Assembly: GCF_020745735.1 (NCBI RefSeq)
Contig: NC_083435.1
Location: 12,555,201 to 12,619,200 of the forward strand
Source of the DNA: Hemiscyllium ocellatum
Taxonomy: Eukaryota
DNA: 64,000 bases
Direction of reading: 5' to 3'
Shown: positions 6,378-62,600 of the stretch, piece by piece
How positions within the stretch are numbered: the first letter of the stretch is position 1
Layout of the letters: each line of letters opens with the position of its first letter
Translations under genes and position numbers: made by a program
The notes under the pieces: model-generated
Seen by the model: the letters and a program-made list of their open reading frames with translations, nothing else
Databases searched by the model: none
What the model was told of the DNA's origin: nothing

Positions 6378-9300
6378 TCAGTGCCCTTTAATTCCACAGA
6401 TTGTCAGCGGGGCGGAGTTTTTCCTGTCATCATTTGATCCCAAATGAAAGAAGGGAAAGAGCCTCTCAGTGAAAGTGTGGGTGAAAGTGTGGAGATGGGT
6501 CATGGTGTCCGCATTGTAAAATGACACCTGTCCACCCTCATAGTCCAGGAAAACCCCGATCTTCCAGGGATTCACGCTTGTGCTCAGGCGGATCCATGAG
6601 GGGCAAGTGCCGGCTAAATAACCACTCCCAGGAATCAGCCACACAACCCAATATCCTGTCTCCGGTCTTGGGTCAATACCCCCCTTCCTCTCCACAGACT
6701 CTCGGGCCACCCCCAAGCCCCACTCAGTCTTCTCCCCCACCTCCACCTCCCAGTAATGTCTCCCTGATGTGAATCCCTCCAATCCAAGGACACAAGTACA
6801 CTGATCAAACTGTGTCACTTTTCTCGGACGTTCAGTTGGCTCGTCTCCGAGTTGCGCACTGGTTCGGTCCTGGGACAGGACTAGGCAGGGATTTGCAGTG
6901 TTTGGATCCAGAGTCAGAGAGGCTGGAACTGTGGGAAAGTTAAATTAACAAAATTAGTCATTAAGGGAAAGAAGGGAAAAGGTACAAGGTGGGTGGGTAA
7001 AATTCAGTTAGATGGAGGGATGGCTGGAAAAGGGAGGGAGGAGACAACAGAAGCTTGAAGTATAGAAGAGGGACTGCAGAATGAAAGAAATGAAAAAGAA
7101 AAGATGGGGGTGGATGAGGGTTGTCATGGTGCATAGGAGGTGGGAAAAGAGAAAGAGGTAGAGGGGAAAGGGCACATGATGAGGAACAGGGAAGAGGAGA
7201 GGAAAAAAATGAATGAAAGGGAGGGAGAGAAAGCAAATCCTGTCAGAGAGTCAGAATGTGGAAATTATAGAAAGGGAAGTGGTGGGATTAATTCAAATTC
7301 ACACTTCAGTGTGAGCTTTATTTCAATTAATTACACACCTTCATACTCACATCTACTGATTAATAGCTTCCCATGTTTATATTAACAATTCATCCCAATC
7401 AACCCTTTGTTAATATATTCATCATTTGGTTCCTCATTCCGTTCAGCCTCAGGTATCCCTTCAGAACTTGTTAGATGATAACAGATACCCTTTCTTTAGA
7501 AATAAGTCAACACGTAACAATAAAAAGACATAAAATGAAATAAACAAAATCCTCTTTTCTCTTTCTTTCTTTAAAGTTCCAAGGATATTCTTCAGTTTCT
7601 GAGAACTTCTCCCATTCTTTGATTCCTGAACGCTGCTATCCCCCCCCTCCCATTTCAATGTAGACATTTCTCCATCAACTAGCATTTGTTTTTAAACTGC
7701 AGTTTTGATCCTCAGTCTTTTCTCACTCATACATTTTGTTAAGTGTACATTATCTCATAGAATCTTATTATCTATGGTAGGACTCAATGGGCATTGCTGT
7801 TGTGTCATCTTTTGGAATTTGTTTGCAATAATTTTACTTAGAAAACTTCCATTATACCACTTCACCAAGAACAGTTTCTGCCACTAAGGTACTTTTACTA
7901 CTCCACTGACCTTTTAAGCTTCTCATCCTAAAGGGCAACATTTACCTCCATTCCCAACAAGCAAAATTATAAACTGTCCTGAACTTGAGAACTCAAAGAG
8001 ATTTGCATTAGAAGTTCCACTGAAATCAAATATTTCTATTTCCTAACATCTCCTTATGATGTAGAATTCAAAATACATGTTTCATACAGTTGATATTGTA
8101 TGGGTGACTATGGGCCTGTGGCTAATAGAGTTGAAGCCTACAATGCATGATGGGAAATTATATTAACCTTACATAAAACACCAGAAAGGAAGAATTAAAA
8201 TCAGACGACTAACCACTGAGGCAAATGGCTGATGCTAAAGGTTATTCAACTGCTGCAAAATGGATAAAATAAGATTTTTAAGAAAAACCATGGAAACACA
8301 TGTCTCCTGTTTGCACAGCTGTTGGAGAAATTAGCTCAGAACTCTGAGGGTCTTGGGCAAGGGTGCAGGACATTGAATAGGCTAGAAAACTGGGAAAAAA
8401 GTGTTATGAAAGAAGAAGTATCGAAGACATCAGCAGCGACAACTTGAGACCAACCATCGCCAAGAGAGGGCACTAAGTTTAGAACTCAGAGAATAGACGT
8501 ATCAGAACAAAGCTGGCCAGATTCTCATGAACTGGTAATATCTAGATTCTTGTAAAACAGATAATTTATTGATAGTGTGTTAATAAGAACTAAAGAGTTG
8601 CTAATAAAGAGGAAATTGCATTATATTCTAATTTGGCTATCTGTCCTTCATCATGAAATTTGAGATTCTAGTGAATAAATGATCAGCACAATGGAGAGGT
8701 TATATTCCATCTGCAAATGTGTTGCTGGTCAAAGCACAGCAGGTTAGGCAGCATCTCAGGAATAGAGAATTCGACGTTTCGAGCATAAGCCCTTCACTTA
8801 TGCTCGAAACGTCGAATTCTCTATTCCTGAGATGCTGCCTAACCTGCTGTGCTTTGACCAGCAACACATTTGCAGCTGTGATCTCCAGCATCTGCAGACC
8901 TCATTTTTTACTCGAAGGTTATATTCCATGAAAGGAATTCAATAATATTCTGTTGAAGAGTCATCTAAACTCACAATGTTGCTCTCTTTTCTCTGAGCTG
9001 GGGGAGTCCAAAACTAGAGGATATAGGTTTAGGATAAGAAGGGGAAAATTTATAACGGTCCTAAGGTGCAACTTTTTCATGCAGAGGGTGGTGCAAGTAT
9101 GGAATGAGCTGTTAGAGGAAGTGGTGGAGACTGCTAAAATTGCAACATTTAAAAGACATTTGGATGGGTATAGGAGTCGGAAGGGTTTAGAGGGATATGG
9201 GCCAAGTGCTAGCAAATAGGACTAGATTAATGTAGAATATCTGTTCAGCATGGGCGAGTGGGACCACTGGGTCTGTTACCATGCTCTACATCTCTATGAC

Positions 9301-15300: not shown

Positions 15301-17064
15301 AAGTTCAGAACCAGGGGCCACTGTCAACAGATACCAGCTTGGCCACCTAGGACTGAGGTGAGAAGAAGTTTCTTCATCCAGAGAATAGTGAGCCTGTTGA
15401 ATTCTTTGCCACAGAAATTGGTTGAGGCCAAAACATTGTATGCTTTCAAAAAGATTTTTTTTTACGTATATAGTTATTAGGGCTAAAGGGATCAAAGGGT
15501 ATGTGGAGGAAATTGCAACAAGTGAAGTATTTTGCAGGAAAAATGAGGAGAGACAATATAAACTAAATGCTGCAGTTTAAATGGGGGAATAAACACACAA
15601 ATTTTCAAGGTAATTGGATAAAAAGTAAGAGGTTTTCATCTGTTGGATGATCAGCCACAATAACATTGAATGACAGAGCAGGCTTAAATGGCTGAATGGC
15701 CTTCTCATGCTCTCATTTACTATGTTTCTTTCTGTGTTGCAGAATTAATGATTTAATTAAGATGGTCTATATGTCGGATACTATATCTCAATATCAGCTA
15801 CACTCAGAGACACAATATCTCACAGTCACCTTATGAGACAAACCCCTGTGAAATGGCAACTGAATTACAATGTGAACATCAGAAGAAAATTACACTTATG
15901 AACAGGGAAACAATTCCACACATAAGTTTCTAGATCATGACAATTCATTCACGAAAGATTTATTGTATTCCTGAGAATCTGCAGACAGTGTGGGAGCAGT
16001 TAATACAGTGACAACAGCAGAACTATCCAGGAATTAGCACAAATTTAGGTTAATTGTGCTTCTATTAAAAAAAAGAGTAGTTTATTAAATTCAAAGTTAT
16101 CACCTTTTTTTGTGATTAATACACTGGCCGGTATTATAATCCTACCTTCAGAAACATCAGCTCGTCCCTTTCCTCCATCTGTTTCTGTAACTTTGAGAGC
16201 TTCACTTCAATGGAACTTAATTTCAGGCGGATGTCTTGAAGGTTTTTCTCCATTGGTTCTACAATCCTCTCCTCTTCTTCCCTGAGATCTCTGAGTAAAC
16301 GCTGCTCTTTCTCAGTGAGAATCTGGTGCATTTTAGTGAACTCGGATGTGATGTGGGTCTGCAGACTGCTCGCCTGTTCCTACCAAATGAAATGTGAAAC
16401 CTCATTAATGTCCCGCGGTAAAGGGAACAAAACTAACCGAGATCCCAGAAAATCAGCACAGGGAGACCTCACCCTCACTTCGGAAATCTTCCCTTTCTGG
16501 GTCAGTTCTGTTTCGAGAACTGCCGATTTCTTCTCTGTGAGAGAATCAATGGAAGATTTCAGCCGATTCTAATATCCGAGAGAAATATAGAGAATTAGAC
16601 CATGCCATTGTGAACAGATAGTAAGTTTATATTTTTTTCTCTCTCTCATTTACCTTATAGACTTCAACTGCTTCTTTAATCGGTAGGAATTTGTGGAGTG
16701 CGTGTTCACGCGAATCACGACAAATTAAACAGCTCAATTTTTTTTCAGTTACACAGAACAGCTTCAAATCTTCCTGATGATGCTCACATTGAAGGTTACG
16801 TTCCTCCCTGTTCGGTTCCAAATTTAATGCTCGAGCTTTCTCGGCCAGACTCGTTAAGGCCCAGTTCACTCTTAGGCTAATTTCGGGAAATTCACTTCTA
16901 CATTCCGGGCAGGAATGTCCCTGCCCATTTTCCCAACTCTGGGTGATGCAGGAGCGACAGAAGTTGTGTCCACACTCCAGTGATACCGGGTCCCTGAAGA
17001 AATCCAGACAAATGGGACAAATGACCTCCTCGGTCAAGCTGCGGAGCTGCTGCCTGGAAGCCAT
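6378..17064 (-). CDS. TRIM-A: RING/B-box2/coiled-coil/PRY-SPRY (B30.2) E3 ligase, TRIM39/A33/nuclear factor 7-like, 476 aa, 6 coding exons
   Basis: Exons 17064-16654 (411 nt; C3HC4 RING CPIC..CGHNFCRSC..CPEC, B-box CEHH..C..C..C..H..H), 16568-16473 (96), 16379-16146 (234), 14650-14628 (23), 12857-12742 (116), 6928-6378 (551; LTLDPNTA..GRHYWEVEV..KIGVFLDYE, TGA). All introns GT-AG, phases give one open frame, and exon sizes match the other two paralogs. Confidence 0.93.
8711..8915. mobile_element. Palindromic PLE-derived insertion (perfect 79-bp arms, 14-bp TSD)
   Basis: Arms 8711-8789 and 8797-8875 are exact reverse complements; TSD AGGTTATATTCCAT at 8697-8710 and 8916-8929. Confidence 0.92.
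8985..9310 (+). mobile_element. CR1-like LINE 3' end
   Basis: ORF2 C-terminus (FF.QRVV..WNEL..EVV) and ctctatgact tail. Confidence 0.85.
9636..9925 (-). mobile_element. CR1-like LINE 3' end
   Basis: Same motif on the minus strand (ORF 9710-9901). Confidence 0.85.
9950..10206 (+). mobile_element. Deu-domain SINE (SacSINE1-like)
   Basis: AAAACCCATCT.GTTCA.TAAT..C.TTTAGGGAAGGAAATCTG..CAGCAATGTGGTTGACTCT core, GGGCAATAAATG tail and terminal A-run. Confidence 0.7.
10210..10780 (-). mobile_element. CR1 endonuclease-region fragment interrupted by an HE1 tail
   Basis: Matches 43900-44360; HE1 tail at about 10420-10523. Confidence 0.7.
10855..11822 (+). mobile_element. Penelope-like element 3' part (family 1), GIY-YIG region and pLTR
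   Basis: FPCHCRNCKTC, VIYCIRCSRCGLLYIGK, LIFRLGTLQPQGI motifs; degenerate hammerhead at about 11698-11733. Confidence 0.85.
11830..12350 (-). mobile_element. CR1 ORF1 (esterase-like) fragment
   Basis: GDSLVR-like motif near 12150, similar to 37710-37900. Confidence 0.55.
13127..13420 (+). mobile_element. HE1-like V-SINE
   Basis: Head, V-domain and tail as at 1863. Confidence 0.88.
14765..15639 (+). repeat. 117-bp direct repeat (14765-14881 and 15523-15639); second copy lies inside a CR1 3' end (about 15065-15730)
   Basis: TGAAGTATTTTGCAGGAA...AAGTAAGAGGTTTTCAT occurs twice with few mismatches. Confidence 0.85.
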
Positions 17065-20601: not shown

Positions 20602-23600
20602 ATGGCTTCCAGACAGCAGGCCGAGAGTAGGACTGAAAAACACATTTGTCCCATTTGTCTGGATTTCTTTCCCAATCTCGTTCCACTGGAGTGTGGACAC
20701 TACTCCTGCCGCACCTGTATCACCCAGAGTTGGGAAAACTCCTGCCCGGAATGTCGAGAGGTAGGAAACCTCGGGGTAAACCGCACCTTGACGAATCCGG
20801 CCCGGGACGGTCGAAAGTTAAAGCTGGATCCGAAAAAGAGGGCAAATAGACTTCACTGTGAGGAACATCAGGAAGAGCTGAAACTGTTTTGTGAAACTGA
20901 CAAGAAATTGATCTGTCTGATTTGTCGGGATTCGCGGGAACACAAATCTCACAACTTCATGCCGGTCAATGAAGCTGTTGAAATCTACCAGGTAATGGGA
21001 ATGACTTGACATCTGATTTTCCTCAATTACATTTTTCATGGTTTAAAATTTCATTTCTGTCGTTTTACTGTCCCAACCCCAGGATCAGTTGAAATCTTCC
21101 CTAAGTTCTCTCACAGAGAAGAAATCGGCAGTTCGAGAAAAGGAACTGACCCAGAAACGGAAGATTTCCGAAGTGAGGGTGAGCTCTCCCTGTGCTGATT
21201 TTCTGGGATCTCGGTTAGTTTTGTTCACTTTACCGCGGGACATTAATGAGGTTTCACATTTCATTTGGTAGGAACAGGCGAGCAGACTGCAGACCCACAT
21301 CACATCCGAGTTCACGAAAATGCACCAGATTCTCACTGAGAAAGAGCAGCGTTTACTCAGAGATCTCAGGGAAGAAGTGGACAGGATTCTGGAACCAATG
21401 GAGAGAAACCGTCAAGAGATTCAGGACCATTTAAGTTCTATTGAGAAGGACATTTCAAAACTGCAGAAAGAAATAAGGCAAAAAGACGAGGTGGCATTTC
21501 TGATGGTGAGGTGCTTGAGAAAGTGCTGGAGAAACTCAGCAGGTCTGGCAGCATCTGTGAAAAGAAAACGGTGTTAGCGTTTGCAGTCCAATGTGTTTGC
21601 TCACTGAAACATCAGACAGTTACAAAACAACTGACTTGTAACATTGAAATAAATGCAGCACTTAATTAAACAAAGAAAAGCAGGTTTTAACCCATTGACT
21701 TATCATTTCCGGAGTGGTTCTGCTGTTGATTTAATTGATTCTCACACTGTCTACCTGCAACACCTCAGGATTGCATTGTGGTGATCTTAACCCTTAACTT
21801 TAGTGTTGCACAAGTTTAATATTGTTTAGGAGTTCACAATAATTTTATATCTTTTTCCTTTTTAAGTCTACACCCAATTCTACTTTGGAAAGTGCTGTGG
21901 GCATGTTTCTCCCCTCGTGTCAGGCAGTACATTCCGATTACCAGCTCTAAAGAATAGGCCCATGACCTGAAACATTCATTTGGTTAAACTTTGCACACTT
22001 GTTGCCAGTCCTGCTGAGTAATTACAGTATTATCTGTTTTGATTCATTGTTATTGTTAAAAAACGAATCTTAACAGTCCGATTTTGCCAAGTTCCCGCAG
22101 TTCCCCATGTTCCTATTTAAAACACACATTTCCTTATTTGGTCATGGGATGTGGATGCTTTTGCCAGCATTAATTTCTGATCCCTAAGTGCTCCGGAGAA
22201 GCTGATGAGAGCTGCCTTGTTGAGCCATTGCCGTTATTGGAGTGAAGGGCCACCTATATTATTCTTAGGAAGGAAATTCCAGGACAAGACCCAGTGACAC
22301 AAAAAGCAACGGCAATATATTTTGAAGCCAGGGTGATGTGTGGCTTAGAGGGGAATTCACCGATGGTGTTGTTTCTACGCATCTCCTGTCATTCTCCTTT
22401 TACGTGGCAGATATCGTGGATTTGGAAGGTGGTACTGGAGGAAGCTTGGTGAGTTGTTTCAGTGTATCTTGTCGATGGTGCACACTGTTGCCTTGGGAAG
22501 AAATGACTGTTGGAGCTGGGTTGTCAATTAAGTTGCACATGTGTTGCTGGTCAAAGCACAGCAGGCCAGGCAGCATCTCAGGAATAGAGAATTCGACGTT
22601 TCGAGCATAAGCCCTTCATCAGGAATAAGAGAGAGAGCCAAGCAGGCTAAGATAAAAGGTAGGGAGGAGGGACTAGGGGGAGGGGCGATGGAGGTGGGAT
22701 AGGTGGAAGGAGGTCAAGGTGAGGGTGATAGGCCGGAGTGGGGTGGGGGCGGAGAGGTCAGGAAGAGTCTGTGCAGAGGAGATGACCTGGGGGGTGCAAT
22801 GAGAGAGAGACTCACTGAAATCCTTGTAGAGGGAGGAAGAGAGCTGATTTGTTCTGGATAATGTCAAGCTTGTTGAATGTTTTCGGAGCTGCTCTCATTC
22901 ATCACATCTCGGACCTGTGCCTTGCATAGATGGTGGGGAGAAAGGAGACAAGTTATTCACCAGTCAAGTTTTAGCCTCTGAACTGTTTTAAAGCATTATT
23001 GTTTATGTCTGATCCAGTTCAGTTTCTAGTCAATGGTAACACACAGGATGTAGAAAGTGGGGTATTAAGCGATGATTGTAATGCCATACAATGTCAAGGG
23101 CAATGGTTAGAATCTCTCTTGTTAAAGATGATCATTGTCCGGCATTTGTATGTCTCAAATGTTACTTGCCACTTTTTAGCCTAAGCTTGAACCTCCTAAG
23201 CACCAGGTCTTGCTGCTTATGGATATAGACTGCTTTTGGAATCTGAGCAGTGATGAATGGTGCAGAACATTGTGAACGACTGCACTCCTGACCTTAGGAT
23301 GGAGGGCAGATCATTGACAAAACAGTTAAAGATGGTTGAGTCTAGGACACTACTTTAAGAAATTCAGGGCTCTTGTGCCACAGTGATAGAGACACTGCCT
23401 CTGACCCAGAGTGTATAAGCCCTTCATCAGGAATGCCAGGAGGCCAGTGTTCAAGACCCACATGCCTCAGAGGTGTGTAATAACAACTCTAAACAAGTTG
23501 ATTCAGAAAATATCTACCCTGAAGAACTTCTGGTGTCCTGGGCCCAGATGATTAAATCCACAACCACAATGTAGTTCCTTTGTCCTAGATGTGACTCCAA

Positions 23601-26600: not shown

Positions 26601-29600
26601 CCCAGACACCCAATGGTGTCCCATTTATACATTTCCTGTGCCTGGATTACCAGCAGTGGCTACTACTCTCGGTGGTGCTCTCAGCAGCACTCCAGCAAAG
26701 GGCAACAGTGCAGTACAGTGTAATGGTAATGTCACTGGATTAACAATCTAGACATGCAGATTGCAATGAAAGGAGTACAGCTGCAGATTTCCCAAATGAT
26801 ATAAGTTCAATTTATTAAAGAAGAGCATGTGGGGAAAGAACTGGAGGGAGACAGGTTATGGAAAGAGAGAAGGAGGATAAGAAGTACTTGCTCAGCACTT
26901 TGCGGGGATAGGGGTGGTTTGTTCTCTGCTGTTGATTTCATGGGGCACCTGACATTGCCAGGTAAGTGCTTCAGGAAATTTAAACCATATCCAGCTTCCA
27001 TTGCCAATGAAATATGAAGTTCACGTTTCTCACCAGTTCAAAGACACCTATATTTGTTCCAAAAACAGAAATTGCTGGAAAAGCTCAGCAGGTCTGGCAG
27101 CACCCGTGGAGGAAAAAAACGAGTAAATGTTTCGGGTCCACTGAGCTTCCTCAGAACTGATGGCAGCTAAGAAAAAGACTGTCTTTCTGCAGCAGATAGG
27201 GTAAAGTGAGGGAGTAAGGAGTAAATGGGAGAATCAGATAAATCCCAAGGGGAAGGAATAACAGTTGGACAGACAACGGAGTGGATGATGGATTAGTGGT
27301 GCTGGAAGTGCACAGCAGTTCAGGCAGCATCCGAGGAGCAGTAAAATCGACATTTCATCAGGAATAAAAACAGAGAGCCTGAAGCGTGGAGAGATAAGCT
27401 AAAGGAGGGTGGGGAGAAAGTAGCATAGAGTACAATAGGTGAGTGGGGTAGGGGATGAAGGTGATAGGTCGGGGGCGGGGGGAGGATGGAGTGGATAGGT
27501 GGAAAAGAAGATAGGCAGGGAGGACAAGTCATGGGGACAGTGCTGAGCTGCAAGTTTGGAACTGGGGTGAGGTGGGGGAAGGGGAAATGAGGAAACTGTT
27601 GAAGTCCACATTGATGCCCTGGGGTTGAAGTGTTCCGAGGCGGAAGATGAGGCGTTTTTCCTCTAGGCATCTGGTGGTGAGGGAGCGGTGGTGAAGGAGG
27701 CCCAGGACCTCCATGTCCTTGGCAGAGTGGGAGGGCGAGTTGGGCCACAGGGCAGTGTGGTTGATTGGTGCGGGTGTCCAGGAGATGTTCCCTAAAGTAG
27801 AAGGCGTCCAGTCTTCCCAATGTAAAGGAGACCACATCGGGAGCAACGGATACAATAAGTGATATTAGTGGATGTGCAGGTAAAACTTTCCAGCATCTGC
27901 AGTCATTGTTTTCACCTAAGGGAGTGGATGACAATTACCTTGGAGAATGTTTCCAGAAGGCTGTAGAGTTCCCAAACAGAAAATGAGGTGCTGCTCTTCC
28001 AGCTTGCGCTGACCTTCACTGGAGCATTGCAGCAAGGCTCAGGCAGACATGTTGGCCAGGGAGCAAAGTAATATGTTGAAGTAGCAGGAAACTGGAAGCT
28101 GAGAGTCTTCTTTGCAGATAGAACGTAGATGTTCTCCAAAGAGTTCACCCAGTCTATACTTTGTTTCCCTATGTTGAAGAGACCATAACTCATGGTTAAA
28201 CATTAACAGTCCTCATTAGTAGTTATTCATTCTCCTAGGTTAATTGTTATCCACTCCTTTGTCTGTCCAACTGTCCTTCTTTTTCCTTGGGCTCTATGTC
28301 CACCTGTTGTTTACTCCTTACCCTCTTTCCCACCCTGTCTTCAGCATATAAACCACCTTTATCTGAGCTACCATCCATTCTGAGGAGGGTCATTGGACCT
28401 GAAACGTTAACTCTGATTTCTCTCCACAAATGCTGTCACTTCTGCTGTGTTTTACAGCAATTTCTGTTTTTGTTTCAGATTTCCAATACCCACATTTCCA
28501 TTTTTATCCATATTTGCTTTCCTACTCACACCTCAATTTCTGGACTCCCTCTCCTCTTCCCTTCCCGCGCTATAGTCCCCATTACTGTTCCTTCATTCGG
28601 TCTTTCACGTCTTCTCGCTCCTTGTCTGCACAAGCTCACCTCTCCCTCCTCCCCCATTCTCTCCACACCATGCTCTCAAATTCTTGCCCCCACAAACAAA
28701 TTTCTCTCCCCTTTCCAACGGTCAGTCTTCACTCAATCACCAATATTGTACCAGCACTTGTCACCTCCCTCTCTATTTACCTGTCTCTCACCAGCCCTCT
28801 TCCTCCATGCCCTTTTCATCACTTACCGCTCCCCTCACTCTTCCATTTCTCACTGTTTCTTTCTCTCTCTCTTTCTCCTCACCCTATTCCTCCCTCCGTT
28901 CTTCAGCACTTCCTCTCCTTTTGGCCATGATTTGGAGATGCCGGTGTTGGGCTGGGGTGTACAAAATTAAAAATCACACAACACCAGATTATAGTCCAAC
29001 AGGTTTAATTGGAAACACACTAGCTTTCGGAGCAACGCTCCTTCATCAGGTGATGTCTCCTTTTGGCAACCGTGTTGCCTTCCTCCACTTATTCTCCAGT
29101 CTCCCCTTTCCCAGCGATCGTACCTCCATATTCTGTGCTTCTGTATACTTTATTCCCTCTCCCCATGCAGTCTCAACCATGCAGTGCCTCTCCCTCACTA
29201 ACTGCATTGTTTCAACTTCCCCCAGCTCCAGCCTCTCTGACTCTGGATCCGAACACAGCGCATCCCCAGCTCATCCTGTCTGAGGACCGGACCAGTGTGA
29301 AACATGGAGACAAATGGCAGCTGCTGCCTGACTCCTCGGAGAGATTTGATCCTTGCCCCTTTGTACTGGGATCAGAGGGATTCAAATCAGGGAGACATTA
29401 CTGGGAGGTGGAGGTCGCGAACAAGACCGAGTGGAGAGTGGGAGTCGCCCGAGAGTCTGTGGACAGGAAAGGGGACATAGACCCAAAACCTGACACCGGA
29501 TACTGGATTTTGAGGCTGGTTGCTGGAAGTGTTTATTTTGCAGCCACATCTCCTTCACGGACCCCCGTCTCCCTAAATGAGAATCCCCGGAAGATCGGGG

Positions 29601-29776
29601 TTTTCCTGGACTATGAGGATGGACAGGTATCATTTTACAATGCGGACACCATGTCCCACCTCTACACTTTCACTCACACTTTCACTGAGAGGCTCTTTCC
29701 CTTCTTCCACCCAGGAGGGAATGACGATGGGGAAAACTCCGCCCCGCTGACAATCTCCGGGATTAAAGGGCATTGA
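20602..29776 (+). CDS. TRIM-B: RING/B-box2/coiled-coil/PRY-SPRY protein, TRIM39/A33-like, 469 aa, 6 coding exons, shortened RING region
   Basis: Exons 20602-20991 (390), 21083-21178 (96), 21272-21505 (234), 23810-23832 (23), 26137-26252 (116), 29226-29776 (551). GT-AG introns, continuous frame, PRY/SPRY motifs LTLDPNTAH, RFD, GRHYWEVEV, KIGVFLDYE. Confidence 0.93.
22130..23700 (-). mobile_element. Old CR1-like LINE with nested PLE (about 22535-22845) and tRNA-SINE (about 23368-23515)
   Basis: 3' tail complementary to the Deu-SINE tail, degraded RT-like sequence, nested insertions. Confidence 0.6.
22591..22626 (-). ncRNA. Minimal type I hammerhead ribozyme motif (PLE family 1), intact
   Basis: AUUC-CUGAUGA-A-GGGC-UUAU-GCUC-GAAACGUC-GAAU. 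Confidence 0.8.
24485..24521 (+). ncRNA. Minimal hammerhead motif (PLE family 4), sense in TRIM-B intron 4
   Basis: CUAC-CUGAUGA-AGG-AACAGCGC-CCU-GAAAGCUA-GUAG. Confidence 0.65.
25068..25246. mobile_element. Palindromic PLE-derived insertion with TSD
   Basis: Inverted arms CTGAAAATGTGTTGCTGG.. / ..CCAGCAACACATTTTCAG; TSD CACAATGACT(G/C)GCT at 25054 and 25247. Confidence 0.85.
27060..28485. mobile_element. Composite PLE: family-3 element with inverted pLTRs, interrupted by a family-1 PLE (27289-27920)
   Basis: 27060-27290 is the inverse of 28240-28485; the nested insert is flanked by GGAGTGGATGA at 27278-27288 and 27921-27931. Confidence 0.75.
28377..28411 (+). ncRNA. Minimal hammerhead motif (PLE family 3), weak stem I
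   Basis: AUU-CUGAGGA-GGGUC-AUUG-GACCU-GAAACGUU-AAC. Confidence 0.6.
28926..29055 (-). mobile_element. 130-bp PLE pLTR-derived insertion (family 4) with 12-bp TSD
   Basis: TSD TCTCCTTTTGGC at 28914-28925 and 29056-29067; related copies at about 25530-25612 and 34491-34670. Confidence 0.85.
29018..29052 (-). ncRNA. Minimal type I hammerhead ribozyme motif (PLE family 4), intact
   Basis: CAC-CUGAUGA-A-GGAGC-GUU-GCUCC-GAAAGCUA-GUG. Confidence 0.82.
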
Positions 29777-32900: not shown

Positions 32901-33836
32901 CACCTGGATGAGGGCATAGAAGGGTGGGTTAGTAAATTTGCAGATGACACTAAGGTCGGTGGAGTTGTGGATAGTGACGAAGGATGTTGTAGGTTACAGA
33001 GAGATATAGACAAGCTGCAGAGCTGAACTGAGAGGTGGCAAATGGAGTTTAATGCGGACAAGTGTGAGGTGATTCACTTTGATCGGAGTAACCGGAATGC
33101 AAAGTACTGGGCTAATAGTAAGATTCGTGGTAGTGGAGATGAGCAAAGAGATTTCGGTGTCCAGGTACACAGATCCTTGAAAGTTGCCACCCAGGCTGAC
33201 AGGGTTGTTAAGAAGGTATACAGTGTTTTAGCTTTTATTAATAGAGGGATTGAGTTCCGGAACCATGAGGTCATGCTGCAGCTGTACAAAACTCTGGTGA
33301 GGCTGCACTTGGAGTATTGTGTACAGTTCTGGTCACCGCATAATAAGAAGGATGTGGAAGCTTAGGAAAGGGTGCAGAGGAGATTTACTAGGATGTTGCC
33401 TGGTATGGAGGGAAGGTCTTACGAGGAAACGCTGAGAGACTTGAGGCTGTTTTCGTTAGAGAGAAGAAGTTTGAGAGGTGACTTAATAGAGACATATAAG
33501 ATAATCAGAGGGTTAGATAGGGTGGACAGGGAGAGCCTTTTTCCAAATATGGTGACGGTGAGCACGAGGGGGCATAGCTTTAAATTGAGGGGTGATAGAT
33601 ATAGGACAGATATCAGAGGTAGTTTCTTTACTCAGAGAGTAGTAAGGGTATGGAATGCTTTGCCTGCAACGGTAGTAGATTCGTCAAATTTAAGTACATT
33701 TAAGTCGTCATTGGACAAGCATATGGACGTACATGGAATAGTGTAGGTTAGATGGGCTTCAGGTTGGTATGACAGGTCGGCGCAACATCGAGGGCTGAAG
33801 GGCCTGTACTGCGCTGTAATATTCTATGTTCTATGT
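32901..33836 (+). mobile_element. Young CR1-like LINE 3' part (different subfamily)
   Basis: SKFADDTK RT motif, MEFNADKCEVIHF, LERRSLRGDLIETYK, (TTCTATG)n tail. Confidence 0.9.
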
Positions 33837-35890: not shown

Positions 35891-36087
35891 TATTTTAATG
35901 GATACTGATCGAAGGATATCGACCTCGAACTTTAACTCTGCTTCTCTCCAACGGATGCTGCTTAATCTGCTCAGTATTCCCGACGATTTCTGTTTCGTTT
36001 CAGATTTCCAGCATTCTCTGCAGTTTATTGCCTTTACATGCCCTCATTTTGGTATAAGTACTGCTTACATAAGAGATGCCTACTTAA

Positions 36088-36790
36088 GAAATAGGAGCAG
36101 AAGAATGCCATCTGAATCTGCTCTGCCATTCTATAAGATCGTGGCTGATCGTCTTGTGGTCTCAGGTCCACTAACCTGCCCACTCATCATACCCCTTAAT
36201 TCCTTTACTGTTCAAAAATATATCTATCTTTGTCTTAAAAACATTCAAGGAGGTACTTCAATTGTTTCAGGGGGCTGGGAATTCCACAGATTCACAACCC
36301 TTTAAGTGAAGAAGTTCCTCAATTCAGTCCTAAGTCTGTTCTTCTTTATTTTTGAGGCTATATCCCCAGTTCTAGTTTCACCTGCCAGTGGAAACAACCT
36401 CCCTGCTTCTATTTTATGTATACTCTACATAGTTTTATATTTGCTAAACAATTGCCCCTCACTCTTCTAAATTCTAATGAGTACAGTTCCAATCTACTCA
36501 ATCTCTCCCCATAAGCCAACCTCCCTCAATTCTGGAATCAACCAAGTGAACCTCCTCTGCACCTCCTTCAGTGCCAGTGTATCCTTTCTTAAGTAAGGAG
36601 ACCAAAATGGGACACATTACTCCAGGTATGGCCTCACAGTTGCAACATAACCTCCCTGTTTTTAAATTCCATCTCTCTCGCAATGAAAATCAGTATTCCG
36701 TTAGCTTACTTAATTACCTATTGTTTCTGAAAACCAACTTCTTGTGATTCATGCACAAGGACACCCAGGTGCCTTCTGCATAACAAAGTC
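36088..36790 (-). mobile_element. CR1-like LINE 3' part (older family)
   Basis: Degraded ORF2 C-terminus and aagaaataggagcag-type tail. Confidence 0.7.
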
Positions 36791-44549: not shown

Positions 44550-45725
44550 AACCTCTATGAAAAAGGTAACCCTTAGGATCCTTTGAAATCTTTCTCCTCT
44601 CACTTTAAATCTATGCCCTCTAGTTTTGGACTCCCCAGTCCTGGGAAAACTCCCTGTCTATTTAGCTTATCCATGCCCCTTATGATTTATAAACCTATTT
44701 AAGGTCACCTGTCAGCTTCCGATGCTCCAGGGAAAGCAGCCCCAGTCCATTCAGCACCTTCCTATCGCTCAAATCCTCCAACCTGGGCAACATCTTTGGA
44801 CATGTATATTTTTTCTCAGCTCTTTCAAGTTTAACAATATCCTTCCAATAACAGGGGCACCAGACTTGCATGCAGTATTCCAAACGTGACCTAAACAATG
44901 TCCTGTACGGATGCAACAGATGCTCCGAACTTCTGTACTCAATGCACTGACTAATTAAGGCAAGCATATCAAATACCTTCACTATCCTATCTACTGGCGA
45001 CTTCACTTTCGAGGAACTATGAATTTGCACTCCAAGGTCTCTATGTTGAGTACCACTCCACAGGATCTTAGCATGAAGTGTATGAGTCCTGCCCTGATTT
45101 GCCTTTTGAAAATGCAGCACTTCACATTTATCTAAATTAAACTCCCATCTACCACTCTTGGGACCATTGGCCCACCTGATCAAGATCCTTTTGTACTCTG
45201 AGGTAGCCTTCTTTGCAGACTACTAAGTCTCCTATTTTGGTGTCATCTGCAAACTTACTGACCATACCTCCTATATTCACATCCAAATCATTCATAAAAA
45301 TGACAAATAGCACTGGACCCAGCACTGATCCTTGTGGTACAACACAGGTCACAGGCCACCAGTCTGAAAATCAAGTCTGTCTTTTTGAGCCAGTTCTGTA
45401 TTCGAATGGGTAGTTATCTCTGTATTCCATGTGAACTAACCTTGTTAACCAGTCTACCATGCAGAACCTTGTTAAAAGCCTTACCAAAGTCCATACAGAC
45501 CTTGTCCACCGTTCTGCCCTCATCAATCCTCTTCATTACTACTTCAAATAATTCTATTAAAGTAGTGAGACACAATTTCTCTCACACACACACACAGCCA
45601 TGTTGACCATGCCTAAACAGTCCTTGCTTTTCTAAATACATGGGAATGCTATCCCTCAGGATTCCCTCCAAAATGTGCTCACCACTGGTCTATCATTCCT
45701 TGGCTTTTCCTGACCACCTTTTTTA
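44550..45725 (-). mobile_element. CR1-like LINE RT/3' part
   Basis: VPQGSVLGPVLF..SKFADDTK and KCEVLHF. Confidence 0.88.
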
Positions 45726-47304: not shown

Positions 47305-47488
47305 ATGGAAACAAAAAGCACCATGCTCAGCAGGGAGCAGCTGTCCACGTATTTTGTTGATGGTTGAGGGCTAACCTGTTAATACACAGCTACAATCACA
47401 TCAGTGAGAAACTGTGTAAATGGCGGGTGGGTGTGTGATAAATCAGTTCATTACCTGATTGCGCTGGGAGTTCATTCATAGTGGTGAG
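47305..47488 (+). pseudogene. Decayed ancestral N-terminus of the ZNF gene (about two degenerate fingers), now uORFs
   Basis: aacATGG opens METKSTMLSREQLSTYFVDG* (47305-47367), resembling a linker plus finger start. Another frame reads HSYNHISEKLCKW, then IHSGE leads into finger 1. Confidence 0.6.
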
Positions 47489-48799
47489 ATGATGTTCACT
47501 TGCCCTGTTTGTGGAAAGGAATTCACTGATTCGTCCCACCTACTGAGACACCAGCGAGTGCACACTGGGGAAAGACCATTCACCTGCTCCGTTTGTTGGA
47601 AGGGATTCACTCAGTCATCCCATCTCCTGAGACACCAGCATGTTCACACTGACAAAAGACCTTTTAACTGTCCTGATTGTGAGAAGCCATTTAAAAGTAA
47701 ACAGGATCTGCTGAGACATCAACATACTCATACTGGTGAGAGGCCATTCACCTGCTTAAACTGTGGGAAGGGATTCACTAATTCATCCAACCTGCTGAAG
47801 CACCAACGAGTTCACACTGATGAACGACCTTTTAAATGCTCAGACTGTGGGAAGTGTTATAAAAGCTCAGAGGAACTGACATGCCATCAACGTGTTCATA
47901 CTGATAAAAGACCATTCAGATGCTCTGACTGTGGGGCTGGGTTCACCCGATCATCTCAACTTACTATACATCAACGCCGTCACACTGGAGAGAGACCATA
48001 TATGTGCTCCATATGCGGGAAGGGATTCACTTGCTCATCCCATCTTACGACACACCAACGTATTCACACCAATAAGAGACCTTTCAAATGTTCTGACTGT
48101 GAAGAGAGGTTTAAAAGCAGAAATGAGCTGCTGACACACCAGCATAATCACACCGGTGAGAGACCATTCACCTGTTCTGATTGCGGCAAGGGATTCTGTC
48201 GATCATCTCATCTCCTGATACACCAGCGAGTTCACAATGGGGAGAGACCATTCATCTGCCCTGTGTGTGGCAAGAGATTCACACAATCATCCATCCTCCT
48301 GACACACCAGCGAATTCACACTGGGGAGAGACCTTTCATTTGCCCCATGTGTGGGAAGAGATTCACCCAGTCATCCCACCTATTGACACACCAGCTTGTT
48401 CACAATGACAAGAGACCTTTTACATGCTCTGACTGTGAGAGGAAATTTAAAACGAAAAGAGACCTGCTGATGCACCAGCGAGGTCACACTGGGGAGAGGC
48501 CATTCACCTGCTCCACATGTGGAAAGGGATTCACCCATTCATCTCACCTGCTGACACACCAACGCACTCACACTGGGGAGAGGCCATTCACGTGTTCTGT
48601 GTGTGACAAGGGATTCACTTGTACGTCCCACTTACTGAGACATCAAAGGGTTCACACCGGGGAGAGGCCATTCACCTGCTCTCTGTGTAAGAAAGGATTT
48701 ACTCAATCATCCCACCTAATAACACACCAGAGAGTTCATATGCAACAGCAGGGATTGGATTCTGCTGATAATGCTGTGATTAATATCAATCAGGACTGA
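47489..48799 (+). CDS. C2H2 (Kruppel-type) zinc-finger protein, 15 tandem fingers, about 436 aa, no KRAB/SCAN/BTB domain visible
   Basis: 15 CxxC-x12-HxxxH units with TGERP-type linkers. First ATG of this open frame is at 47489 (the ORF track starts at TTG 47459). Splice acceptor tttgttttacag ends at 47229; AATAAA at 48891. Confidence 0.88.
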
Positions 48800-59690: not shown

Positions 59691-62600
59691 ATGGCTTCCA
59701 AACAGCAGCTCCAGAGTTGGACCGAGGAGGCAATTTGTCCCATTTGTCTGGGTTTCTTCACCGATCCGGTTACACTGGATTGTGGACACAACTTCTGCCG
59801 CTCCTGTATCACCCAGAGTTGGGAAAAGAAGGAGATAAACTCCTGCCCGCAATGTAGAGAGGAGTTTCCGGAAAGAAACCTCAGGGTAAATCGGGCCTTA
59901 GCGAATCTGGCCGAGGAGGCTCGAAAATTAAAGCTGGATCCGAAAGAGAAGGAAAGTAAACCTCACTGTGAGGTACATCAGGAAGATCTGAAGCTGTTTT
60001 GTGAGACTGACAAGAAATTAATCTGTGTGATTTGTCGAGATTCGCGGGAACACAGAGAGCACCGCTTCATCCCGGTTAAAGAGGCTGTTGAAGTCTACAA
60101 GGTAAAAGGAGAAAAATTTTATGAATATTTTGTTTTATTAAGCTGTTAAGAGATGGTATCACACACCTCTGGTGCAGGTGGGATTTGAACCCCGGTCTCG
60201 TGCTTAAAGCTCTATGGAAATAATTTATCAAGTTAGAGTTTTATTGTGTTTTTGTGGTCTAAAGCTTTAATTCTGTGTTTTAATCTCCCAATTTCAGGAT
60301 CAACTGAAACTTTCCTTAGATGCTCTCACGAAGAAGAAATCGGCGGTTTTAGAAATGGAACGGAAACAGAAACAGAAGATTTCTGAAACTAAAGTAATCT
60401 CTCCTTGTACAGGTTTTCCGGAATCTCGTTTTGTTCCCTTTATCGCGACACATTTATGATGTTTCGCATTTCATTTTGGTAGGAACTGGCGAGCAGTCTG
60501 CAGACCCACATCACATCCGAGTTCACTAAAATGCACCAGATTCTCACTGAGAAAGAGCAGCGTTTACTCGGAGATCTCAGGGAAGAAGAGGAGAGGATTG
60601 TAGAACCAATGGAGAAAAACCTTCGAGAGATTCAGGAGAATTTAAATTCCATTGAGGAGAATCTCTCAAAGTTGCAGAAACAGATGGAGCAAGCAGATGA
60701 GCTGGTAATTACGAAGGTAAGCGAATATATATTGTTCAGTGAATCTTTACCCGGTTGCAAAATGCCTGTTAAATTAATACTGCATTTAATCAAGCTGAAT
60801 TTGTACCTGTTTTTCGACGGTTCTCCTGCTGTCACTGAACTAACCTCTCCAACACTATCTCGGGAACACCTTGCTATTAGACCTTGTGATCTAATTACTT
60901 GTGGTGAATCATTTTCTTGTTGGGTAAGTGTGATTTCCCCCTTGAATCCACACTGTCATTCTGGCACACGCACATGCAGGAAACTACGTGGGCGTGTCAC
61001 GCACGTTGATTCTGACAATTGCTGTTGGATTTTTCTTAACCTCCAGCGTGTCAGTCAGCACATCACGATTTGTTGTTAAAAGAACATTGACTACGTTTGA
61101 TTCCAGTTATGTTGACGGTTTGTTACTTTACATTACAGATCGCCAGTACTTGGCTCCTTTAGAATTGAGGCATTTGGTTTACTTTGACATTCCGCGGTGT
61201 TAGCTCCAAATCCACCACTTTACCCTTCCGTGTCAAATCATACCTGCCCGGTGTCTGCACATTTCAGCTGTCTATCTCCTCTTCAAATCTGTTGCTGTCA
61301 TCCTCATTATTTGTAATTTATTTATTTTAGGGGAAAGCGTGCCTGGAGAAAAGGTAGGACAGGGATTTTACTGAAGTCTTGCAAGGTTTGTTTAAAAAAA
61401 ATCTTAGGATTGTGTTGTTATGATTATTAACGATTTCATTCCTGTGCACAGACACAAAATTATATTTTAAAATGATTATTAATTAGCAGATAATGTCTCC
61501 ACTTATCTTACTGCAATAGTACGTTTTAATATAGTGACTCATAACTGCGCTCTATTTTTAAATTAAATTACAAGACGACATAGATTCAGACACCAGAGAA
61601 GAGACCTTTCAGCCCATCGAGTCTGCATCAACCTAGCTACACTAGTCCCACTTTCCAGCCTTGAAGCTATGATATTGCAAATACTCATCCAAGCACTTTA
61701 TAAAAGATGCAAAGGCTCTTACCTTAACAACACCACGGCAGTGCATTCCAGGTTCTTCCACCCTCTAAGTAAAAAACATCCTCAAACCCTGCCCTTCACT
61801 TTTACAAAGTGCCTACTCGTTATTTGACATTCAAATAAGGGAAACAGCTGCTCCTATCAACCCAGTCCCTGACGCTCTTCATTTTATGCGCCCCTATCAG
61901 CGTCAGTGTCACCAGCCGCTCCGCCCCCACCTCCACCCCCACCCCCACCCCACAATACACACACACACACACACACACACAGCCTGATGTGTAAATAATA
62001 CTCTGATCTTCCAATGTCTTGTGTGGCTATGGCTTTGAGATTGACCCTGAGGGAGCCACACGGCTCATCTTTGCAAAGTTTGAACTTATACGACACCTAA
62101 TGACCGTGAGAAAGCCCCATGTCCCGAAGCAGAACGGAGTTCTGTGTTTAACCTAGTTTGCTCTGTCCAAAAAACTGCAACCATTCATATAGCGCCCTCA
62201 ATGCATTTAAACATACAAATGCTCTGCAATCGAACATTAGAACTCAGAAAACAAAAATTGCGACCAAGCCACAAAAGAAGATACTAACACATATGACGAG
62301 ATCAGGTTTGTGGACAATCTTGAAGGTGGAACGAGAGGTAGAGAAGCTCAGGATTTAACGAGAGATTTTCAGAGTTTAAGGACTCGACAATTTCAGGCAC
62401 ATTCGCCAGTAGCGAAGAGGCTGCAATCAGAGGTGTGCAAGAGACCAAAAGTAGAGCAGGTCAAGATACCCAGAGAGTTGTGTGCCTGTCTATTGCACAA
62501 TTCGATGGTAAGTAAATATCCAATGTTTAGATGTTTACGCACTTCATATTTTCAGTCTTCTTCTTTGAATTTCAAGTTTTGCGTATAAAATACTGTCTCA

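Follow-up and report, generated by a model that had tools for sequence, protein, structure and literature searches.

Recurrent gene conversion as the probable source of a near-identical coiled-coil segment in divergent class-IV TRIM paralogs of sharks

The stretch of Hemiscyllium ocellatum DNA analysed here (64,000 nucleotides (nt) of contig NC_083435.1, hereafter the window) contains three class-IV TRIM genes, termed TRIM-A (minus strand), TRIM-B (plus strand) and TRIM-C (plus strand), which share a nearly identical segment at the start of their third coding exon. Comparison of these genes with their relatives in other sharks indicates that this segment very probably owes its near-identity to recurrent, non-reciprocal interlocus gene conversion, a form of partial concerted evolution, within a large tandem class-IV TRIM family. 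Exon 1, which codes for the RING and B-box domains, comprises 411 nt (390 in B), followed by exons 2 and 3 of 96 and 234 nt, respectively; exons 1-3 are in phase 0 throughout and display AG/GT borders. This organization agrees with the exon numbering of an earlier reading of the same DNA, termed here the original prediction. The parts of the three genes that define the tract are listed below.

16239..16379, minus strand: TRIM-A exon 3 nt 1-141, putatively homogenised block (exon codons 1-47, approximately protein residues 170-216)
16146..16238, minus strand: TRIM-A exon 3 nt 142-234, A-specific and outside the tract (64-75% identity to B and C)
21272..21377, plus strand: TRIM-B exon 3 nt 1-106, putatively homogenised block, with the tract end near nt 106
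21378..21505, plus strand: remainder of TRIM-B exon 3, divergent in the alignment
60483..60623, plus strand: TRIM-C exon 3 nt 1-141, putatively homogenised block as delimited by alignment
60624..60716, plus strand: TRIM-C exon 3 nt 142-234, a 3' half typical of most family members
16380..16472, minus strand: TRIM-A intron 2 (93 nt), within the A/B tract (A/B 2/93 differences)
16473..16568, minus strand: TRIM-A exon 2 (96 nt, coiled coil), of which the 3' part (nt 58-96) lies in the A/B tract
21140..21271, plus strand: TRIM-B exon 2 nt 58-96 and intron 2, the 5' part of the A/B tract

The first 141 nt of exon 3 differ at 2/141 positions between A (16379-16239, minus strand) and C (60483-60623), namely nt 5 (A/T, Gln to Leu) and nt 88 (A/G, Arg to Gly). 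Both differences are non-synonymous, leaving no silent difference at approximately 27.7 synonymous sites. Over nt 1-106 the corresponding values are 2/106 for A and B and 4/106 for B and C. Identity falls afterwards, to 75% (A/C), 64.5% (A/B) and 72% (B/C) over nt 142-234, while exon 1 displays 74-84% nucleotide identity with a proportion of synonymous differences (pS) of 0.21-0.42 (A/C 0.37, A/B 0.42), and exon 5 is 60-70% identical among the paralogs. The block counts and coordinates of the original prediction were confirmed. The longest A/C stretch with no more than two mismatches extends over 142 coding nt, a length reached by 0/5000 permutations, and the A/C run of 48 identical third-codon positions was reached by 0/20000. 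When polymorphic sites were tested in the manner of Sawyer/GENECONV, A/B reached significance (p 1e-4), but A/C and B/C escaped detection, since a block that is identical in all three copies has no polymorphic sites; this test was replaced by the run-length permutation on pairwise and third-position mismatches given above.

Homologous loci were compared in two further sharks. A Chiloscyllium punctatum scaffold (L001), collinear with window positions 11458-37130 at 92-95% identity, holds the orthologs of A and B. The further loci contain the C. punctatum paralogs D (L002) and E (L004), as well as the whale-shark copies Rty1-3 (L003) and Rty4 (L005). Among hemiscylliids, the nucleotide comparison comprised copies A, B and C of Hemiscyllium and copies A, B, D and E of C. 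punctatum; a candidate C. punctatum ortholog of C (P0208) was compared at the protein level only. Divergence between orthologs of Hemiscyllium and C. punctatum amounts to 3-7%.

The tract extends into non-coding DNA and its ends depend on the pair of genes compared. Between A and B, high identity begins near nt 58 of exon 2, continues through the entire intron 2 and ends at nt 106 of exon 3, while introns 1 and 3 of the two genes are approximately 40-50% identical and scarcely alignable. A/C identity begins about 7 nt before exon 3, inside the end of intron 2, and TRIM-C intron 2 (60394-60482) carries a 5-nt deletion and displays 83% identity to A and B. The A/B and A/C tracts therefore begin at different points, meaning that tract ends differ between pairs. 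The 3' limit of the tract lies at nt 106 for B, at nt 117 for paralog D and at nt 141 for A, and the ends as a whole vary among A, B, C, D and E. The boundaries of A and B are nevertheless stable between species: nt 107-141 of TRIM-B exon 3 contain B-specific sites common to the C. punctatum B ortholog, the A boundary at nt 141/142 is the same in the window species and in C. punctatum, and nt 142-234 of TRIM-A differ from the C. punctatum A ortholog at 3/93 positions.

Paralog D of C. punctatum (chiPu_0012158, L002:10697-10813) displays a distinct arrangement, with an exon 2 and intron 2 that are nearly unalignable with the other copies. Its exon 3 nt 1-117 differ from the consensus at three positions, all A>G replacements, and identity starts exactly at the splice acceptor. 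This pattern fits two readings, namely tracts limited by homology or selection filtering the tracts that survive.

Within the tract, paralogs resemble each other as closely as orthologs do, while outside it they are far more divergent. Exon 1 differs at 13/412 and 13/391 positions between orthologs and at approximately 100/391 between paralogs. In intron 2 the values are 5/93 and 4/93 for orthologs and 2/93 and 3/93 for paralogs, and in exon 3 nt 1-106 there are one and two differences between orthologs against two and one between paralogs. Intron 2 and exon 3 nt 1-106 taken together contain 12 differing sites between orthologs and eight between paralogs (Fisher p 2e-6 versus exon 1, a value that is illustrative only as the pooled tests reuse lineages). 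Over nt 1-105 of exon 3, TRIM-A is identical to C. punctatum B. The same relation holds at greater depth, where mean nucleotide divergence in the block is 2.3% among hemiscylliid paralogs and 9.5% (range 7-12%) among orthologs across families, the corresponding exon 1 means being 19% and 13%; these pooled counts again draw on the same lineages more than once and serve as illustration only. A block in which paralogs lie closer to one another than orthologs bears the signature of concerted evolution.

The genealogies of the tract and its flanks lead to a similar picture. In a flank tree built from exon 1 and exon 3 nt 142-234, TRIM-A groups with C. punctatum A (support 100/100), as do the two B genes (100/100), whale-shark Rty1 is joined to C (98/96) and Rty4 to paralog E (100/98). 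The split between hemiscylliids and the whale shark is thus younger than lineages A, B, C and E. The block tree, built from exon 2 nt 58 through exon 3 nt 105, is an unresolved star from which the long A and B stems have vanished. Derived variants are instead common to paralogs of one species: T>C at position 26 of intron 2 is confined to C. punctatum A, B and E, T>C at position 58 of intron 2 to A and B of the window species, and the silent change C>T at nt 138 of exon 3 to C. punctatum A and E. In the whale shark, nt 64 G, nt 65 A and nt 109 A are shared among the copies as a mosaic. The orthologous groupings find no supporting site in exon 3 nt 1-106. The same pattern is seen in independent assemblies of two other species.

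The original prediction described the block in three TRIM paralogs. Near-identity indeed holds for A, B and C but is not special to them, as the 47-residue module is present in no fewer than 14 further Hemiscyllium paralogs, with 43-47 of the 47 residues matching at the protein level. In most of these paralogs the second half of exon 3 is shared as well; A and B lack this half, suggesting that they are divergent members that keep receiving or exchanging the 5' part only. In protein data, the A orthologs of two Chiloscyllium species differ at three module residues, which suggests a continuing mosaic exchange. From the sequences compared, the block is a family-wide feature of shark A33-like TRIMs.

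Purifying selection, perhaps with a contribution of splicing enhancers or RNA structure, could in principle have kept the first ~47 codons of exon 3 unchanged without any exchange. The exon 3a part (residues 170-216) is the most conserved region of the family, with a mean pairwise amino-acid identity of 0.85 in a set of 65 shark proteins and of 0.98 in a set of 10 Hemiscyllium paralogs; in the same two sets, exon 1 reaches 0.75 and 0.84 and PRY/SPRY 0.70 and 0.84. In addition, 475 proteins match exon 3 at E ≤ 1e-12, the best 120 of which are 86-99% identical to it, or 88-99% over 78 residues, and the onset of identity at the splice acceptor in C and D is what constraint limited to an exon would also give. 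Selection on the protein, however, cannot produce the absence of silent differences or an intron with 2/93 differences. Across the seven hemiscylliid copies, 0-2 of ~21 silent sites differ in nt 1-105 versus 17-41 of ~81 in exon 1. Yet orthologs differ at 1-2 of ~28 silent block sites, about the intronic rate of 4-7%, and whale-shark Rty4, which looks like a copy that escaped homogenisation, differs from the hemiscylliid copies at 5-6 of 20 silent block sites, matching its silent divergence in exon 1. Silent sites of the block are thus not constrained. Changes private to single copies comprise seven replacements and two silent substitutions (a ratio of replacement to silent rates, dN/dS, of ~0.9). 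An explanation at the RNA level was rejected, as an Rfam search returned no family match in the block (one chance snoRNA match lies outside it) and the predicted fold of the block is not unusual (z-score +1.1). Constraint alone also fails to account for paralogs that are closer than orthologs and for derived variants common to paralogs within a species only, and is considered quite improbable. The original prediction had proposed near-identity in other sharks as a counter-test favouring constraint; near-identity was found in C. punctatum, and the Rty1 block is 91-94% identical in nucleotides, but conversion stands, given that silent sites change between orthologs and in one escaped copy. Purifying selection and conversion thus act together on exon 3, the former as a contributing factor.

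A single ancient exchange before the Hemiscyllium/Chiloscyllium split, which gave A and B the consensus segment and was followed by a slow shark mutation rate that kept the similarity, would explain why the two species have the same 3' boundaries (nt 106 for B and nt 141 for A), which hence predate the split, and it is in line with the low divergence between orthologs. It is at odds with the differing tract ends of A, B, C, D and E, with species-private derived variants common to paralogs in three species, and with paralog distances in the block that are no larger than those of orthologs. In particular, exon 2 nt 58-96 of TRIM-B differ from C. punctatum B at 7/39 positions and from C. punctatum A at 2/39; TRIM-B is A-like there and C. 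punctatum B is not, which points to conversion after the two genera split. One ancient exchange is therefore judged highly unlikely. The remaining possibility, raised by the original prediction, is a collapsed or chimeric assembly that placed one read consensus into three loci, for which the near-identity itself is the sole argument. This possibility did not survive: private substitutions and unique flanks mark every copy, no N occurs in the window, and both syntenic C. punctatum DNA (92-95% over 25 kb) and a RefSeq chromosome record of the whale shark contain the same block with the same boundaries. On this cross-species evidence assembly collapse was rejected, its probability being negligible.

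Several observations weigh against recurrent conversion or weaken the case for it. The pairs entering the pooled Fisher tests are not independent, few informative sites lie inside the block, and approximately unbiased (AU) tests on the 237-column block have low power and reject no grouping. Exon 3 is the best-conserved protein region across sharks separated far longer, and part of the identity could reflect slow evolution; for paralogs C and D, identity has its 5' edge almost exactly at the splice acceptor. Recurrent gene conversion, the mechanism put forward by the original prediction, is nonetheless upheld by the involvement of an intron, by tract ends specific to each pair, by species-private variants shared among paralogs in three species and by the closeness of paralogs, relative to orthologs, within the block.

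What the comparison shows is the tract with its ends, its distribution across species and the participation of silent and intronic sites, whereas the process behind them can be proposed as follows. Heteroduplex repair between paralogs would repeatedly overwrite a block of 100-280 base pairs (bp) made up of the exon 2 3' end, intron 2 (93 nt) and the initial 106-141 nt of exon 3. Tracts would halt at points of earlier homology loss or of lineage-specific sequence retained by selection, giving stable 3' ends, and purifying selection on the most conserved part of the coiled coil would act on top of conversion. A and B are arranged head-to-head and A and C are likewise in inverted orientation, so that crossing-over would invert the intervening DNA. 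We infer that short non-crossover tracts of about 150-280 bp fit better, with donors and direction of transfer likewise putative.

The structural context of the block was explored by AlphaFold prediction for the A ortholog of C. plagiosum, calculated as a monomer with a family alignment. The model displays a single helix extending over residues 129-248, with a predicted local distance difference test (pLDDT) score above 90 for residues 150-230. The midpoint of the helix, at 188.5, is located inside exon 3a, and the extended block shared by A, B and E (residues 157-216) is centred at 186.5. The nearest solved relative of the coiled coil and linker region is the TRIM69 coiled coil (PDB code 4NQJ; E 7.8e-18). 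TRIM coiled coils form antiparallel dimers, with hetero-oligomers mostly between close relatives (PMC13591260; for the antiparallel dimer, Sanchez 2014 and Goldstone 2014 as cited there). If the dyad lies near the helix midpoint, a position assumed from other TRIM structures, the block would plausibly pack mainly on itself, which makes the idea of a shared dimerisation module geometrically plausible. The divergent 5' part of exon 2 would then pack against the divergent exon 3b of the partner, and this could favour homodimers.

These features bear on the functional reading of the original prediction, in which conversion is selectively maintained in order that paralogs with different PRY/SPRY heads may heterodimerise. 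The predicted position of the helix midpoint, the TRIM69 coiled coil as nearest solved structure and the tendency of TRIM hetero-oligomers to form between close relatives would accord with it. Conversely, the divergent helix ends would pack together and may favour homodimers, conversion limited to the most conserved and most homologous segment is the neutral expectation, and heterodimerisation may be a relic of shared ancestry, as the same review notes (PMC13591260). Adaptive maintenance of this kind is considered unlikely. A wider version is more doubtful still: conversion of the central coiled coil might be maintained across the whole array of shark A33-like TRIMs, so that dozens of paralogs that differ in their PRY/SPRY heads co-assemble, with lineage-specific helix ends (the 5' part of exon 2 and exon 3b) tuning or restricting the choice of partners; together they would make up a combinatorial lattice of intracellular sensors.

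Interlocus gene conversion in tandem immune genes is a well-known mechanism; its occurrence in sharks and in a TRIM coiled coil is new as far as literature searches showed. The zebrafish NLR-B30.2 genes (Howe et al. 2016, PMC4852459) are similarly a large tandem family of fish innate-immune genes in which conversion in one part of the gene was recognised by synonymous divergence, and the authors speculate that homogeneity of the oligomerising domain matters for multimers (PMC4852459). The zebrafish case involves the domains NACHT and B30.2, while the shark tract consists of a sub-exon TRIM coiled-coil block plus a small intron, which could be followed in the orthologs of three sharks. Primate TRIM paralogs (Han et al. 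2011, PMC3228819; for TRIM5/TRIM22, Sawyer et al. 2007, PMC2151084) are also clustered class-IV TRIMs with occasional conversion between neighbours, an example being a tail-to-tail pair that is 100% identical in human (PMC3228819). Primate conversion affected whole genes or was judged "not extensive". This contrasts with the short, recurrent and boundary-stable tracts in sharks, which cover the coiled-coil centre only, in genes otherwise 20-30% divergent. The teleost finTRIM/btr genes (van der Aa et al. 2009, PMC2657112) display the same architecture, with a RING/B-box exon, coiled-coil exons that measure 96 and 234 bp in zebrafish, a final B30.2 exon and tandem expansions, but finTRIMs are teleost-specific and not orthologs of the shark family; recombination tests in that paper concern B30.2 only, and no conversion restricted to the coiled coil is described there (PMC2657112). 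The likeness to TRIM69 4NQJ and the antiparallel TRIM dimer lies in the long single helix H1 and is a structural analogy only, the shark proteins having a putative dimer state and a dyad position assumed from other TRIM structures.

With boundaries that are stable through the orthologs of three sharks, the block constitutes a well-resolved natural case of sub-exon concerted evolution in a vertebrate innate-immune family. If the block is left unmasked, exon 3 and whole-gene trees will mislead both the orthology and the dating of shark TRIM expansions. The coincidence of the homogenised block with the centre of the predicted coiled coil leads to a testable hypothesis, namely that a shared centre permits heterodimers.

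The remaining gene features of the window are as follows; the 3' end and last exon of TRIM-C lie beyond the window end.

TRIM-A, minus strand: exon 1 16654-17064; exon 2 16473-16568; intron 2 16380-16472; exon 3 16146-16379
TRIM-B, plus strand: exon 1 20602-20991; exon 2 21083-21178; intron 2 21179-21271; exon 3 21272-21505
TRIM-C, plus strand: exon 1 59691-60101; exon 2 60298-60393; intron 2 60394-60482; exon 3 60483-60716
16654..17064, minus strand: TRIM-A exon 1, RING and B-box2 by Pfam matches; divergent control region
59691..60101, plus strand: TRIM-C exon 1, RING and B-box2, delimited by exon borders; the flanks group with whale-shark Rty1
6381..6929, minus strand: TRIM-A PRY/SPRY exon, Pfam PRY and SPRY matches
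29213..29776, plus strand: TRIM-B PRY/SPRY exon, homologous to the last exon of A

Assignment to the TRIM family is based on the RING in TRIM-A exon 1 (Pfam zf-C3HC4_4, E 2.6e-16, plus other RING models), the B-box in the same exon (zf-B_box, E 3.7e-7; 30.6 bits, cut-off 24.1 bits) and the PRY (E 6.7e-18) and SPRY (E 5.1e-22) matches of its last exon. The Pfam TRIM_CC match to the coiled coil remained below its cut-off, and the coiled coil was recognised by the long AlphaFold helix that follows the B-box and by the match to 4NQJ. The PRY/SPRY exons of A and B are 68% identical in amino acids. Protein searches gave the family name "zinc-binding protein A33-like / nuclear factor 7-like" and listed numerous paralogs, both on a single Hemiscyllium ocellatum chromosome of 49.3 Mb and in other sharks.

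Individual genes display further peculiarities. The RING exon of TRIM-B (20602-20991) lacks 12 nt and a further 9 nt compared with A and C and has several altered RING residues, although exons 1-3 and the PRY/SPRY exon of this gene are still open. The 9-nt deletion is not present in the C. punctatum ortholog, indicating that erosion of the RING went on after the genera split. In the C. punctatum model chiPu_0019339 (400 residues; L001:10001-19219) the middle of exon 3 is spliced directly to the PRY/SPRY exon; the genomic exon 3 is intact there and has a GT donor, and the splice is thus probably an annotation error. In the whale shark, the neighbours of Rty1 are decayed TRIM copies (L003:20965-21198 and L003:18815-19067): exon 3 of Rty2 is interrupted by an in-frame stop and this copy has a GC splice donor, while Rty3 (minus strand) contains indels and several stops.

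Other sequences of the cluster comprise both genes and repeats. A 446-residue open reading frame (ORF) of tandem C2H2 zinc fingers is located between TRIM-B and TRIM-C (47459-48799); zinc-finger genes are also interspersed with the immune multigene arrays of zebrafish NLR clusters (PMC4852459). Intron 1 of TRIM-C contains an insertion of ~110 nt (60150-60260) that is absent from A and B and displays a tRNA-like T-arm motif in reverse orientation; judging from this motif, it is probably a fragment of a short interspersed nuclear element (SINE). The ORFs at 33372-33746 and 44695-45183 have translations resembling reverse transcriptase, and blastn revealed many dispersed repeats, suggesting that the intergenic DNA of the cluster is largely derived from retroelements. 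Finally, a non-coding stretch of ~525 bp with 77% identity is found at window positions 36082-36595, on the C. punctatum scaffold and upstream of Rty1 in the whale shark (L003:597-1121), with one match per locus, and could represent a conserved non-coding element or an old repeat.

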